Origin: Rebecca billardiae RCC1528 | Lineage: Eukaryota > Protista > Haptophyta | Assembly: GCA_965240325.2 (NCBI GenBank) | Contig: OZ251225.1 | Location: 3,968,001-4,032,000, forward strand | Reading direction: 5' to 3' | Length of the DNA stretch: 64,000 nucleotides | Shown here: positions 1 through 5,150 of the stretch, piece after piece | Layout: each line of letters begins with the position of its first letter | Numbering within the stretch: the stretch's first letter is position 1 | The notes under the pieces: model-generated | Databases searched by the model: none | What the model saw: the letters and a program-made list of their open reading frames with translations, nothing else | What the model was told of the DNA's origin: nothing | Program-made: the position numbers and the translations under genes

Positions 1-1655
1 CGGGCTGCGCTGGGCCGCGCAGCGCCGCCGCGCTTTTATCAGCAGCATCGGCCCGCGGCCGCCGCGGTGGCTGGCCGCCTGACGGCCGGTGCTCGCAGGC
101 CGCAGCCCACGCATCCTCGTGGCAGTCTGCACGCAGAGGATGGCAGACCGGCTAACGGCGGCCTCGGCGGCCGCGAGCAGTCCCTTCATCTTCGGTTGAC
201 GGCGTGTCGGCGGCCAAGAGGTGGCACGGGCGGCCACGGTCGTGTCGACTCTGTGCCTCTGACGCCGCGCCTTTGTCGTCCCAGTCAGTGCCAGGCTGCC
301 GCCGTGGACGCCTTGGATGCCAATGCGGATGCCTTGACGAGCGCGTGCGGTCGTTGCGCCTGAAGTGTCTCTGACAGAGCTGATGGCTATGCCGGACGAA
401 TTTGCCGCCGCGGAGCCATCGGCAGTGCCTGACGCACCGCCATCGCCGCGCCGATGCGCATTCGCCGCGCCAGCGCCACGCAGTCCGGACTCCTGCGCCA
501 ACTCCCAGCTGCTGCTGTCCGTGCTCGGGAACACGGCGCAGCTGGACACACTCTGTGCGCACAGCCTTCTTGCGCGCTTACCAGCCAGAGTGAGTGGCAC
601 AGCACATGGCCAATTCGGGCGTGGCGTGCGTCTGAGGCGGCGCTGTGTGACATTGTGCTCGCTGTGAACGGCGCTGTCGACCACAGCGCAGGCGGCCACG
701 ATGCAACGAAGTGTGGCCGCGACGCGTGCGTACATTGTACTGCCGAAACTAGCGTACCTGCGCCAATATTCAAGTGACAATGCCCGCGTCTGACATGCTC
801 TTGGTCCCGCGAGCATGCTGTCCCCTTGTCTCAGCCTATGACTCAGATTGACTAGCACCGTTGTCTAATGGCATCGAGTAGGCTACAGGTAGCAAGGCGC
901 GCGCCGCGCTCGCGCGGCCGGCATGTGCGACGCGCCGCTGCCTCGCGCGGCTGGCGCATGCGAGGGCGCGGATCGCCCAGGGCGCAAGCGTGCGGGCGAG
1001 CTGCGACCGCACAGCTCCTCGCGCGAGCGCGGCGCGCGCTCTACCGACGCTTGGGCGCGCTCGAGTCGCTGGCACCTTCATGGGTCCAAAACGCGCGAGC
1101 GCCAGCTTGCGCGCGCGCTCGAGCTCGCCTTGGTCGGCGTGCGCGACCGACGCGCGCGGCTGGGCGGAGCGCATACACATGGTCCGCGCACAACACGACA
1201 GCAAATCATCGTCCGACTTCCTTGTGCCCGCCTGTGCGCGTTCGCGGTCGGCCGCAGCGGACAAACGTGCCGACGCGCAGTCGCGGGCCATTGGCGAGCG
1301 GCGTGAGCGGCGGAGAGGCGCGCAGCCAGCGGCGCGCGAAGGCACGGTGCCGGGGCGCACCCGCAGGACGCGTGCGCGGGCCGCGCAGACTCGAGCGACG
1401 CCCGCGGTGCGCGGCGAGCGACGCCCTCGGCGCGCGGCGACTGCAGCCTCCGCCCCCCCTACCCGAGGTGCGCGATCGGGTAGGGGACCCCTACCCGAGA
1501 CGCTTCTGGCTCCCCTACCCGTGCCTCGTCACCCACGGCCACGAGCGAATGTGGAAAGACGCGAACCCGCAAAGGATACATTGCGACAGCACTGGCACGG
1601 CCCGCCGACCCCCCCCGCCCGCCAGGGCACAGTTTGTATTCTTCGTCGTCATACG

Positions 1656-2726
1656 ATGGCGGCCGGATCCGCTGCATCAATGCCGCCCGCGACGATCATC
1701 TTTGCGATCTCGCTGCTCGCCGCAGCGCTCGACCCAGCCAGCGGCACGAGCGCGCACCACCTCCGGCGTACTGCTGTTCATCGCTCGCCAGCGGCGTGCG
1801 CCCGGCCAGCCCGGCCCGCGGCGCGTGCATTGCCCGCCCGCGCGCTTGGCGCCGTTCTCGGCCCGCGCGCGGCCGCGCCCGCGCGCCTGAGTGCCGGCCG
1901 GCGGCTCGGGCCGAGGATGCTCCTGGATGACGGCAGTGACATTGACATCGACGTTGTCGCCGCAGCAGAGGCCGCGGCCAAGCTCACGAGCTTCTCCTCG
2001 CCGCCGGGCGACGACGTGCTGCCGGGCGTGAGCGCGGCCGCCTTCCCGTGGGTGGCACTGGCCATCGCGCTGCCGACTGCGTTGGTGCTCCGCGCGGTGG
2101 CGTCGGATGCGCGCGCGGCGTCGTGGGACGTGATGCCCAAGCGCTACCTCATCCGCTGGAGCGCGCCCAGCGCCCGCCGGTACGAGCTGCCCACGGGCGG
2201 CAGCGAGCTGATGCGCGCGGGCCCGGACAACGGGCTTGCGCTCTCGTCCAAGGCGGAGTGCGTGGCGCTCGGCCGGCAGTTCGAGAAGAAGTTCACAGGG
2301 ATCACGTACCAGATCTACGAGGTGAAGGGTGGCGAGGGCGAGGAGGGCGGCGCGCCCTCGGCGCTGCGCATCGTCGGCTCGTACCCCAAGCCAGTCAACG
2401 CGGCGGGCACGTCCGTGCGCGCGTCCGCGGACGCGCAGCGCTCAGCGCGGGACCCCCTGGCGGAGGACTCGCTGGGAGACTCGTGGCGCGAGCTCTTCGA
2501 GTCGTACGCGAGCGAGATCGACGACGAGTGGGCGCGCTTCCGCGAGAGCCTCTTCGTCGTCGGCGGCTCGAGGCTGCAGGTCGTGCGCCCGGGCGAGGAG
2601 GACGACGGCGCGCCGGGCGAGGGCAGGGGCTCGGATGACTCGGACTCGGGCGCTGACGACGGCGATGACGACGACGGCGAGGAGGGCGGGGGCAAACCGA
2701 CGGTGGGCACGCCCGGCTCGGCATGA
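1656..2726 (+). CDS. Nuclear-encoded PsaD-like protein with signal peptide, one TM helix and acidic tail
   Basis: ATG 1656 (or 1680) is in frame with ORF 990..2726. Hydrophobic leader ATIIFAISLLAAAL; TM-like FPWVALAIALPTALVL (~2043-2095). 2139-2408 KRYLIRWSAPSARRYELPTGGSELMRAGPDNGLALSSKAECVALGRQFEKKF..YQIYEV..YPKPVN aligns to the PsaD core (KYAITW..FEMPTGGAAIM..NLL.LARKEQCLALG.QL..KF..Y.IYRV..PEKVN). Confidence 0.8.
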   Translation: MAAGSAASMPPATIIFAISLLAAALDPASGTSAHHLRRTAVHRSPAACARPARPAARALPARALGAVLGPRAAAPARLSAGRRLGPRMLLDDGSDIDIDVVAAAEAAAKLTSFSSPPGDDVLPGVSAAAFPWVALAIALPTALVLRAVASDARAASWDVMPKRYLIRWSAPSARRYELPTGGSELMRAGPDNGLALSSKAECVALGRQFEKKFTGITYQIYEVKGGEGEEGGAPSALRIVGSYPKPVNAAGTSVRASADAQRSARDPLAEDSLGDSWRELFESYASEIDDEWARFRESLFVVGGSRLQVVRPGEEDDGAPGEGRGSDDSDSGADDGDDDDGEEGGGKPTVGTPGSA

Positions 2727-3289
2727 GAGAGAGGCTTCGTCGGCTACGATGGATGACGACGAGAGCGCGTCTCATGCATGATCAACGCAGCGCAAGCGCG
2801 CCACCTGCTCGGCTCGGCTGGGGCAGCTGCTGACACTGCGCGCTCCGCCGCGCGCGGTGTGAGCGCTGGCACCCACTCGAGCTGCCGATGTGATGTCGGT
2901 GTGAGTGATGATGCCGTAGTCCACTGCGGCCTGCGGGGCCTGACGATGTCACAGATTCGGATAGCAGTGATGCTGCTGAGTCAGCACTCTCCGCGTCAGT
3001 TACGCGCCGCTGTCAGTAGTATAGTCAGCACCGTTATTCAGGCCGAACCGTGTCCGTTGACGGCTGCAAGTGGCAGGCGCCCCGCACATTAAGTAGCATA
3101 CATGCACTATGCAGCATCAATAATAACGCTCATCAGCATCCGCCGCAATATATTATTAATATATTTAAAGCGATGCGCGGCCTGACCGGTCGCTGCTCGA
3201 CTATATGCTGACAGTAATGATATACGGTACGGCCAGATTGATGGCGCGGGCGGTTAGACTGAGACCGTACTGAATCGCGGCCCTGCTAT

Positions 3290-3810
3290 GAATGGTGCCC
3301 GATCAGGGCGGCACGCCCACGTCAGGCACGTGCCTCTGGACGGGGCATTGAGCCGTGGCAAGGTCGCCAAATCGCGTGGCGTGGTCCCAGAGAAAGCTGC
3401 CACTACCCCTGACCAGCTTGCTAGCCAAGCCGGTCGTTGATCACCCCGCCGTTGACAGGCGCACACACGCCACGCGTAATCGTATCGGCCATGGCAGCCG
3501 TGTCGGACGGCGGTCGAACGACTACCGCGCAGCCAACACTTTGATCGTCAGACTCACGACTTGTGGGGTCAGACAGAACATTGATAGGTCTGCACCCTCG
3601 CCTGGCATGCCCAAGAGGTCAGCGCAGCCATCAGAAGGGTGATCCTGCCCGCTAGTACTACTTGCCCATCCTTCCCATGCGCAGCCTCACGCGCGCCGTG
3701 GACGGGCATTCACGCCCGCCGCATGGCTCCCTTTCCAAGTCCCCTCCACTTCATGTGGACGACTGGGCCCCGAGGGCTGCCGTAAGGCAAAGGGTGGTCG
3801 TAACGTAGTC
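3290..3810 (+). pseudogene. Degenerate region homologous to 19983-20815(-); possible Ulp1/C48 protease remnant
   Basis: Several clear DNA blocks are shared with the reverse complement of 19983-20815 (e.g. ggacggcggtcgaacgactaccgcgcagccaaca; cttcccatgcgcagcctcac; gggtggtcgtaacgt). Motif remnants: H*AV at 3346 and Q..CGV at 3549-3570. Confidence 0.45.
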
Positions 3811-3878: not shown

Positions 3879-5150
3879 ATGGTCAACCTGAAGAGCCGCA
3901 AGTGTGATCACGCTGGCTGCACCAAGCAGCCTTCGTTCGGCATGCCGGGCGACGCGCGCCCCAGCCGGTGCGCTGCGCACAAGCTGCCCGGCATGGTCGA
4001 CCTGGAGCACCGCAAGTGCGATCACGCTGGCTGCACCAAGCAGCCTGCGTTCGGCATGCCGGGCGACGCGCGCGCCAGCCGGTGCGCTGCGCACAAGCTG
4101 GCCGGCATGGTTGACGTGGTGAGCCGCAAGTGTGATCACACCGGCTGCACCACGCGGCCTTCGTTCGGCATGCCGGGCGACGCGCGCGCCAGCCGGTGCG
4201 CTACGCACATGCTGGCCGGCATGGTCGACGTGGGAAGCCGCAAATGTGATCACGCTGGCTGCACCAAGCAGCCTGCGTTCGGCATGCCGGGCGACGCGCG
4301 CGCCAGCCGGTGCGCTACGCACAAGCTCGCTGGCATGGTCGACCTGAAGAGCCGCCAGTGTGATCACGCTGGCTGCACCAAGTGCCCTTCATTCGGCATG
4401 CCGGGCGACGCGCGCGCCAGCCGGTGCGCTACGCACAAGCTCGCTGGCATGGTCGACCTGAAGAGCCGCCAGTGTGATCACGCTGGCTGCACCAAGTGCC
4501 CTTCATGCGGCATGCCGGGCGACGCGCGCGCCAGCCGGTGCGCTACCCACAAGCTCGCTGGCATGGTCGACCTGAAGAGCCGCCAGTGTGATCACGCCGG
4601 CTGCACCAAGCAGCCTGCGTTCGGCATGCCGGGCGACGCGCGCGCCAGCCGGTGCGCTACGCACAAGCTCGCTGGCATGGTCGACCTGAAGAGCCGCCAG
4701 TGTGATCACGCTGGCTGCACCAAGTGCCCTTCATTCGGCATGCCGGGCGACGCGCGCGCCAGCCGGTGCGCTACGCACAAGCTCGCTGGCATGGTCGACG
4801 TGAAGAGCCGCCAGTGTGATCACGCTGGCTGCACCAAGCAGCCTGCGTTCGGCATGCCAGGTGACGCGCGTCCCAGCCGGTGCGCTGCGCACAAGCTGGC
4901 CGGCATGAAGCGCCTTCGGAGTGGTGCGCACAAGCGCGGGCTGGAGCAAGACATGACGAGCACCAAACAAGTGAGCGCCGCCAAGCGACAGCGGAAGCGC
5001 ACTAGCAGCACAGCCAATGCTGCCTCGGACGTTGTGGCAGCGCGGCAGCCACGGGCGCAGCCGCCGCCGTTTCTGGTCACAGCAAGCGTCGTAACGACGC
5101 CGTCGCGTGTACGACCTGTGGTGATGGCCAGGCGGGTGCGCATGGCCTGA
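3879..5150 (+). CDS. EsV-1-7 cysteine-rich repeat protein, copy A (9 x 38 aa plus basic tail)
   Basis: 114-nt tandem units encode MVDxxxRxCDHxGCTxxPxFGMPGDARASRCAxHKLAG (C-x4-C-x16-C-x2-H). The tail contains KRQRKR. Confidence 0.9.
   Translation: MVNLKSRKCDHAGCTKQPSFGMPGDARPSRCAAHKLPGMVDLEHRKCDHAGCTKQPAFGMPGDARASRCAAHKLAGMVDVVSRKCDHTGCTTRPSFGMPGDARASRCATHMLAGMVDVGSRKCDHAGCTKQPAFGMPGDARASRCATHKLAGMVDLKSRQCDHAGCTKCPSFGMPGDARASRCATHKLAGMVDLKSRQCDHAGCTKCPSCGMPGDARASRCATHKLAGMVDLKSRQCDHAGCTKQPAFGMPGDARASRCATHKLAGMVDLKSRQCDHAGCTKCPSFGMPGDARASRCATHKLAGMVDVKSRQCDHAGCTKQPAFGMPGDARPSRCAAHKLAGMKRLRSGAHKRGLEQDMTSTKQVSAAKRQRKRTSSTANAASDVVAARQPRAQPPPFLVTASVVTTPSRVRPVVMARRVRMA

Follow-up and report, generated by a model that had tools for sequence, protein, structure and literature searches.

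A nuclear PsaD-like gene of the haptophyte Rebecca billardiae encodes a putative membrane-anchored PsaD paralogue with relatives across Pavlovales

Does a PsaD-like gene in the nuclear genome of a haptophyte encode the familiar subunit of photosystem I (PSI), merely moved from the plastid, or does it encode a protein of another kind? The question is raised by a 64,000-nucleotide stretch of the Rebecca billardiae RCC1528 genome (GenBank assembly GCA_965240325.2, contig OZ251225.1, positions 3,968,001 to 4,032,000 of the forward strand), hereafter the window. Here, an uninterrupted nuclear open reading frame (ORF) of 356 codons runs on the plus strand from position 1656 to 2726, with its ATG at 1656 and its TGA at 2724-2726, and its product is related to PsaD. 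PsaD, or PSI subunit II, is among the most conserved and best-studied PSI subunits, and paralogues of a different architecture lie outside the textbook picture. Our results indicate that the window gene is a putative PsaD paralogue, in which the globular core of PsaD is combined with a hydrophobic helix, a C-terminal module and an acidic tail, and that it belongs to a wider family.

The similarity of the window protein to PsaD is real. The Pfam PsaD family (PF02531, curated cut-off 22.4 bits) matches it with 42 bits (E 8.2e-11), residues 162-225 being aligned with positions 23-87 of the 136 in the family's hidden Markov model (HMM). A phmmer search against PDB returned PsaD chains alone, with E of about 1e-11. 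The best match among ordinary chains of about 140 residues is the moss chain 7ksq_D (E 9e-12), aligned over query residues 162-256 with YPKPVNA of the window protein facing YPEKVNA. In an AlphaFold2 (AF2) model based on a 70-sequence alignment, the core has a predicted local distance difference test score (pLDDT) above 90. Foldseek searches with this model ranked PsaD chains at the top (E 3e-6), and VIA-align superposed about 80 residues with Z of 10-11.4 and a root-mean-square deviation of 1.6-2.7 Å, model residues 52-143 (residues 158-249 of the protein) corresponding to PsaD residues ~20-105 of ~138. Compared with PsaD chains of known structure (1jb0_D, 7ksq_D, 8z11_d, 9jj8_d and 9uh3_D), the common core, from the first strand to P-E-K-V-N, is about 30% identical and in both cases basic; it shares a Trp, E-x-P-T-G-G, M-x-x-G-x-N, E-C-x-A-L-G-x-Q and Y-x-I-Y. 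A word-index search with just the PsaD-like piece (window 2127-2435) found no match, since this piece and canonical PsaDs have no 5-residue words in common, and the ESM Atlas, searched by features and by shape, gave no usable lead.

The part of PsaD that has been retained is the globular core, residues ~20-105, whereas both ends of the fold are gone. The N-terminal arm (the first ~20 residues, including FGGSTGGLL) is missing, and so is the clamp end (~106-138). Sequence and structure alignments to PsaD end at about PsaD residue 105-118, beyond which the window protein continues into an unrelated C-terminal module. At the other end, the hydrophobic helix sits where the 'tggll' columns of the canonical N-arm would be and has no counterpart to them. 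In PsaD, the complete C-terminal clamp (~95-138) wraps PsaC, as seen in the 1JB0 structure. Within the core, SSKAEC stands in place of ARKEQC, so that the Arg-Lys at the start of the helix is lost, and PKPVN in place of PEKVN. Canonical PsaD is an extrinsic stromal protein without a membrane helix, whereas the window protein additionally has the C-module, the acidic tail and, at residues 123-147, a hydrophobic helix, and measures about 269 residues after the leader against about 140 for mature canonical PsaD. A nuclear gene with a plastid leader and a PsaD domain is also found in green algae, plants, Karlodinium and Euglena (the polyprotein 9vfj_D); however, those PsaDs are full-length and reside in PSI, whereas the window protein is shortened at both ends of the fold.

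The mature part of the protein, encoded throughout on the plus strand, begins with an acidic N-tail (residues 88-122, window 1917-2021; eight Asp and Glu, one Lys or Arg). This tail is opened by a conserved Met-Leu-Leu, which another gene caller took as the start of P0001. The conserved hydrophobic helix follows (residues 123-147, 2022-2096), with the consensus PGVSxxAxPWVALAIxLPTxxVL and a Kyte-Doolittle hydropathy of 2.04 in a 19-residue window; P123, G124, V125, P131, L135, V144 and L145 are invariant among five orthologues, and the AF2 model places a helix at model residues 21-48, that is, residues 127-154. A linker with a conserved VAxDARA (residues 148-161, 2097-2138; V148, A149, D151 and A152 invariant) leads to the PsaD-like core (residues 162-256, 2139-2423), which consists of four strands, a helix, a hairpin and the P-K-x-V-N motif and is supported by Pfam, PDB, AF2 and VIA-align results. 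This motif (P244, K245, V247 and N248, 2385-2399) is the counterpart of PsaD PEKVN, as aligned to YPEKVNA of 7ksq_D, with the lysine displaced by one position.

Beyond the core lies a family-specific, Trp-rich helical C-module (residues 257-311, 2424-2588) with the consensus RDPLxxDSLGDxWRExFExYxxExDDEWxxFRxxLxxVGGSxLxVV, helical at residues 270-301 in the AF2 model. Neither the Pfam families nor the PDB chains and profiles searched gave a match to it. The protein ends with an acidic low-complexity tail (residues 312-356 and the stop codon, 2589-2726) that contains 16 acidic residues and two basic ones. The initial annotation, made from the sequence of the window, had described a divergent nuclear PsaD homologue whose core is preceded by a leader and a transmembrane helix and followed by a helical stretch and a very acidic tail, lacking FGGSTGGLL and having SSKAEC and PKPVN in place of the usual motifs. 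Our analysis bears this description out on every point, including the missing N-terminal motif, as the Pfam match begins only at HMM position 23. A feature that went unremarked there is that the helical segment and the acidic tail form a conserved module, shared with a group of PsaD-like proteins that have no anchor.

Is this architecture peculiar to one genome? A word-index search identified four orthologues of the same layout, 46-54% identical to the window protein. All of the best hits come from Pavlovales, which evidently makes the source genome that of a pavlovophyte. This layout is found in Diacronema lutheri, in Pavlovales sp. CCMP2436 and in at least five other Pavlovales-like sources. 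The D. lutheri orthologue is the hypothetical protein KFE25_010920, and its gene is essentially single-exon. A profile search of 1.84 billion representative proteins returned seven below 1e-10. One of these is the Pavlovales sp. CCMP2436 protein, which is also known from an MMETSP transcript, and another is itself an MMETSP transcript, so that genes of the family are transcribed in related algae. All five full-length members score above the Pfam PsaD cut-off, the orthologues with 22.5-30.7 bits. Most of the 70 columns that are invariant among the five orthologues belong to the core, the C-module or the helix (P-G-V, P-W, L-P-T), while the leader and the tail vary, as is typical of a functional protein under purifying selection. 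P-K-x-V-N is invariant in this group (group 1), and every orthologue has the acidic tail. One sub-clade of Pavlovales additionally carries an in-frame insert of 45-70 residues with a conserved V.V.YDA.GNP, which separates the PsaD helix from the strand after it; the insert is present in D. lutheri (L001:6001-6996), P0003, P0004, P0006 and P0008 and absent from the window protein, P0007 and P0005.

Weaker profile-search matches, best in the C-terminal part, led to a sister group (group 2) of about 22 clusters of 170-230-residue proteins from metagenomes and metatranscriptomes, with P0063, P0080 and P0014 among its members. Their contigs are GC-rich (63-68%) and eukaryote-like. These proteins lack the hydrophobic helix and have a very divergent PsaD core, but they keep P-K-x-V-N (P-K-x-x-N being invariant), the C-module and the acidic tail. 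Despite its divergence, the core remains recognizable: some members score above the Pfam cut-off, and the group profile matches PDB PsaD chains at ~1e-9. The relationship between the two groups is clear from profile alignment (hhalign 99.5%, E 1.6e-22), which spans both the core and the C-module, and several C-module residues (R, D-x-W-R, D, W and F-R) are invariant across groups 1 and 2. Peculiar to group 2 are a basic K-F-R-R-R stretch and a G-V-G-G-M insert ahead of the C-module, as well as strongly conserved C-termini of the form ...VVDE.G.P.D.GGDY.DDED..[YF]D. The ending in an aromatic residue followed by Asp suggests a specific docking peptide rather than merely an acidic tail. In the leaders of P0067, P0069 and P0073, a hydrophobic stretch is followed by F-x-[AP]-P, which is recognizable as the putative junction motif of complex red-type plastids. 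As an observation apart, four JGI metatranscriptome contigs (P0014, P0077, P0078 and P0079) share an N-terminal presequence of about 100 residues with a hydrophobic start and RRSIR.DGSH.DA.QQ.... It is carried by a PsaD-like protein, a 2-oxoglutarate-Fe(II) (2OG-Fe(II)) oxygenase-type protein and two Rieske-like proteins, and appears to be a long conserved targeting presequence attached to unrelated proteins of one organism.

A third arrangement is seen in P0092 and P0013, a cluster of ENA and Tara metatranscriptome origin: an ASAFVP-type leader, a hydrophobic helix, an acidic linker, a PsaD-like core and two CxxCxGxG motifs. The P0092 core matches with 96% in hhalign (E 1.8e-9). Its zinc-finger Pfam match is not significant (E 0.41), and the CxxCxGxG motifs resemble those of DnaJ-type plastid assembly factors. 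Such repeats are absent from the window protein; among these relatives they occur in P0092 only.

In a tree of the core, the 41 sampled canonical PsaDs all lie on one side of a branch of length 1.0 (94 in the SH-like approximate likelihood ratio test, SH-aLRT). A second long branch (98) carries group 2, and the position of the Pavlovales group is intermediate between group 2 and canonical PsaDs. Since the tree is based on 88 columns, its resolution is limited, and the split is neither dated nor rooted by it. Even so, it does indicate that the window protein is more than a divergent member of the canonical set. The window gene and its relatives are best described as one putative family with three architectures: anchored, soluble and zinc-finger-fused. 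Among publications on PsaD-like proteins and PsaD paralogues and those mentioning the D. lutheri locus tag, we found no description of the family, of its architecture or of the C-module. The PsaD domain is already known, the architecture and the C-module appear to be new, and the only named members are annotated as hypothetical proteins.

We therefore return to the choice between a relocated subunit and a paralogue. Because the N-arm and the clamp end are missing, because the protein falls outside the canonical branch and because it is conserved across Pavlovales, the window gene is predicted to be a PsaD paralogue and not the gene of the ordinary subunit. The plastid side is consistent with this. 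psaD is a standard plastid gene in red-lineage plastids (PMC4717669, PMC6330437), and the genes listed as lacking from the plastome of Pavlova (Diacronema) lutheri relative to other haptophytes are ycf55, ycf47, ycf80, ycf65, rpl34, ycf46 and ycf35, psaD not being listed (PMC4226036, Table 2). Moreover, the PSI structures of three prymnesiophyte haptophytes contain ordinary PsaD chains of 137-140 residues (8z11_d, 9jj8_d and 9uh3_D). Taken together, the architecture and this indirect evidence for a plastid psaD make an ordinary subunit moved to the nucleus unlikely. The initial annotation had also favoured a paralogue, and had named a PsaD HMM match, a phylogeny and haptophyte orthologues among its checks. 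The match exceeds the cut-off, the tree places the protein outside the canonical branch, and Pavlovales orthologues exist, two of them as MMETSP transcripts.

The ORF itself has the hallmarks of a gene over most of its length. From position 1917 to the stop codon, GC content is 0.88-0.96 at third codon positions (GC3) and 0.49-0.60 at second positions, while GC3 is 0.57 past the stop; this pattern is the coding signature of a GC-rich host genome. The leader (1656-1916, 87 residues) differs in having a flat GC content by codon position (0.78/0.76/0.78), and it is about 45 residues longer than the leaders of the orthologues. On these two grounds, the 5' exon structure given here is provisional. 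Candidate in-frame GT-AG introns are present in the leader, and a small in-frame intron or another 5' exon within 1656-1916 is possible. ORFs on the opposite strand or in other frames over 1656-2726 are by-products of GC-richness, as the GC3 periodicity and the homologues are confined to the plus frame. A pseudogene or a chance ORF is ruled out by conservation.

Where would the protein reside? Its leader consists of a signal-peptide-like start (residues 1-30, window 1656-1745, plus strand), with the hydrophobic stretch ATIIFAISLLAAAL and a hydropathy peak over residues 5-30, and of a transit-peptide-like, Arg/Ala/Pro-rich stretch (residues 31-87, 1746-1916) with 12 Lys and Arg and no Asp or Glu. 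Bipartite leaders for complex plastids take this form, with a signal-peptide-like start ahead of a basic stretch free of acidic residues. All five full-length orthologues checked have a signal-peptide-like start, and a junction Phe is found in D. lutheri (..GGARS/FAPC), in P0009 (..ARAAG/FAG) and in P0005 when read from an upstream start (MAAVAVCLATLPG/FAPCG). The P0005 protein was called from an internal Met although an upstream Met lies in frame, so the database protein is N-terminally truncated. On its contig (L004:1519-1668), translation from the upstream Met yields MAAVAVCLATLPG/FAPCGSAARPF..., which has the classic form of a signal peptide and ends in an ASAFAP-type junction.

As for topology, the net charge is -7 before the hydrophobic helix and positive after it, and P0092 has the same arrangement around its helix. 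By the positive-inside rule, we infer a lumenal acidic N-tail and a stromal PsaD-like domain, which would put this domain on the side of the membrane where PsaD itself is found.

What might a PsaD-like domain tethered in this way do? The initial annotation proposed a PSI assembly factor, a placeholder or a ferredoxin tether, with a tail that could mimic ferredoxin, all of them reasonable candidate roles. We give about even weight to the proposal that the window protein is a plastid-imported, thylakoid-anchored PsaD paralogue acting as a PSI accessory factor. Most of that weight falls on a more specific form, somewhat short of even by itself, in which the factor would act at the PSI stromal ridge, either as an assembly placeholder or as an acceptor-side regulator. 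The protein would be imported into the plastid and inserted into the thylakoid membrane with its basic PsaD-like domain on PsaD's stromal side. The core would then make transient contacts with the partners of PsaD, namely ferredoxin and/or the PsaC/PsaA stromal ridge, while the conserved membrane helix would hold the protein at the thylakoid in Pavlovales and the acidic tail would either cover the protein's own basic face or bind a basic partner. The charge distribution fits such a scheme: the net charge of the core is +6 compared with +4.4 in canonical PsaD, and that of the region after the core is about -10 in both groups compared with +1.3. The lysine of PEKVN in Synechocystis PsaD that corresponds to the PKxVN lysine cross-links to ferredoxin. 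A basic core with the PKxVN lysine kept and the PsaC-locking parts lost suggests a transient visitor rather than a stoichiometric subunit.

More tentatively, the protein may be a PsaD mimic that occupies the PsaD/ferredoxin site on PsaC-bearing PSI or on assembly intermediates, its ferredoxin-like acidic tail gating or protecting the iron-sulfur acceptor side before PsaD binds or in its place. As part of the same tentative view, the family might represent a class of acceptor-side factors specific to algae with red-type complex plastids, tethered by a helix in Pavlovales and elsewhere soluble or fused to a zinc finger.

Proteins that work on the stromal side during PSI assembly offer a possible analogy. 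Stromal-side assembly factors and DnaJ-type zinc-finger plastid chaperones include PSA3, PSA2 and Ycf3/Y3IP1 (see also PMC11449065 and PMC6015050). The analogy is a working one alone, in that the window protein might likewise meet acceptor-side subunits of PSI in the course of assembly, and it implies no membership in these families. No relationship in sequence or fold was found between these factors and the window protein, which has no Cys motifs. P0092, unlike the window protein, joins a helix and a PsaD-like core to motifs of the type found in plastid assembly chaperones. Little is known about how red-lineage algae such as haptophytes, diatoms and their kin assemble PSI and regulate its acceptor side. 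To our knowledge, several PSI factors of the green lineage, for example PSA3, are green-specific. The family thus provides a concrete and testable candidate PSI factor in D. lutheri, a cultivated species with an available genome. Were it to prove a ferredoxin tether or a lineage-specific PSI subunit instead, that would likewise be new.

Several considerations weigh against an accessory role in the stroma. The location, topology, partners and function of the window protein are all inferred here from sequence. The loss of the N-arm and the clamp end, which we read as a sign of transient binding, may instead abolish PSI binding by the core. Targeting is less certain than in D. lutheri, because the window protein, despite its hydrophobic start and Arg/Ala-rich stretch, has no Phe after the signal-peptide-like stretch and because GC3 is flat in the leader. 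The helix is followed by the conserved DARA, and if this were cleaved as an AxA processing site, the PsaD-like domain would end up in the lumen. The structural evidence has its own limits: a first AF2 run with five family members alone reached a pLDDT of 59, and no conclusions were drawn from that model, while the alignment behind the later model included canonical PsaDs, so that the structural match depends in part on the sequence match. Nor do sequence reads help with the gene. A Logan contig of 1786 bases that encodes an identical protein is colinear with window positions 1610-3390 and is therefore silent on splicing. One study among the sequencing runs matched, with a small share of words, and its fragmentary contigs, of unspecified library kind, adjoin the gene without covering the PsaD-like ORF, which makes them uninformative on expression and splicing.

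We think it unlikely, but worth weighing, that the protein acts away from PSI as a docking tether for ferredoxin or flavodoxin, its basic core capturing reduced ferredoxin at the membrane and passing it to another acceptor such as a component of cyclic electron flow or FNR, with the acidic tail competing with ferredoxin for the basic face of the core. A core charge of +6 and the invariance of the PKxVN lysine in groups 1 and 2 would suit such a role, as would the absence of those parts of PsaD that hold PsaC. The anchor-less sister group in turn shows that no membrane tether is needed for the module to work. However, the lysine is one position off relative to PEKVN, and ferredoxin in PSI is held mainly by PsaA, PsaC and PsaE, so that an isolated PsaD core may not bind it.

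The same core and helix could instead belong to a stoichiometric subunit of Pavlovales PSI, that is, an extra or alternative subunit II in or beside the PsaD site, its helix packing against the PSI core, perhaps under particular growth conditions. The helix is conserved including its three prolines, which suggests a specific helix-helix contact and not a mere anchor, the PsaD core is kept, and red-lineage structures, judging by their titles, keep yielding new lineage-specific PSI subunits. Nevertheless, we consider this decidedly unlikely, as the clamp end and the N-arm, which stabilize PsaD within PSI, are missing, a helix is lacking altogether from the sister group, and the solved haptophyte PSI structures (no Pavlovales among them) match only through ordinary PsaD.

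The hydrophobic stretch invites yet another explanation, namely that it is not an anchor but a cleavable thylakoid-transfer signal with A-R-A as the AxA site, releasing a soluble, lumenal PsaD-like domain unrelated to the PSI acceptor side. A hydrophobic stretch followed by a conserved VAxDARA does resemble an h-region and a c-region. Yet the region before the helix has a net charge of -7 and no Arg pair, and the basic flank comes after it, the opposite of a signal peptide; moreover, AxA is absent from P0005, and the helix of P0092 is flanked by the same charge arrangement. These features make a lumenal protein quite improbable. Finally, that the window gene is simply the ordinary psaD, transferred from plastid to nucleus and divergent, is very improbable: although psaD is nuclear in some lineages (for example in Karlodinium, with an ASAFAP-type leader; PMC4717168) and the window protein exceeds the Pfam PsaD threshold, only PsaD residues ~20-105 are kept, a helix and a 100-residue foreign C-terminus have been added, the protein stands outside the branch of all canonical PsaDs sampled, and the genes that the P. 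lutheri plastome is reported to lack do not include psaD (PMC4226036).

A few observations concern the surroundings of the gene. The window contains no second copy of the PsaD-like gene, and the D. lutheri locus shows no synteny with the window except for the PsaD-like gene itself. A contig of sequencing run ERR14847148 is 99.7% identical to window positions 1610-3390. It has five extra bases just 5' of the start codon (window ~1645-1656 against L002:40-55), reading CATACAGTACGATGG vs CATACGATGG, which reflects either variation between strains or alleles or a discrepancy between assemblies in the 5' untranslated region. The next gene downstream (window 3879-5150), without apparent link to the PsaD-like gene, encodes an array of Cys/His repeats of about 38 residues (KCDHAGCTKQPSFGMPGD...).

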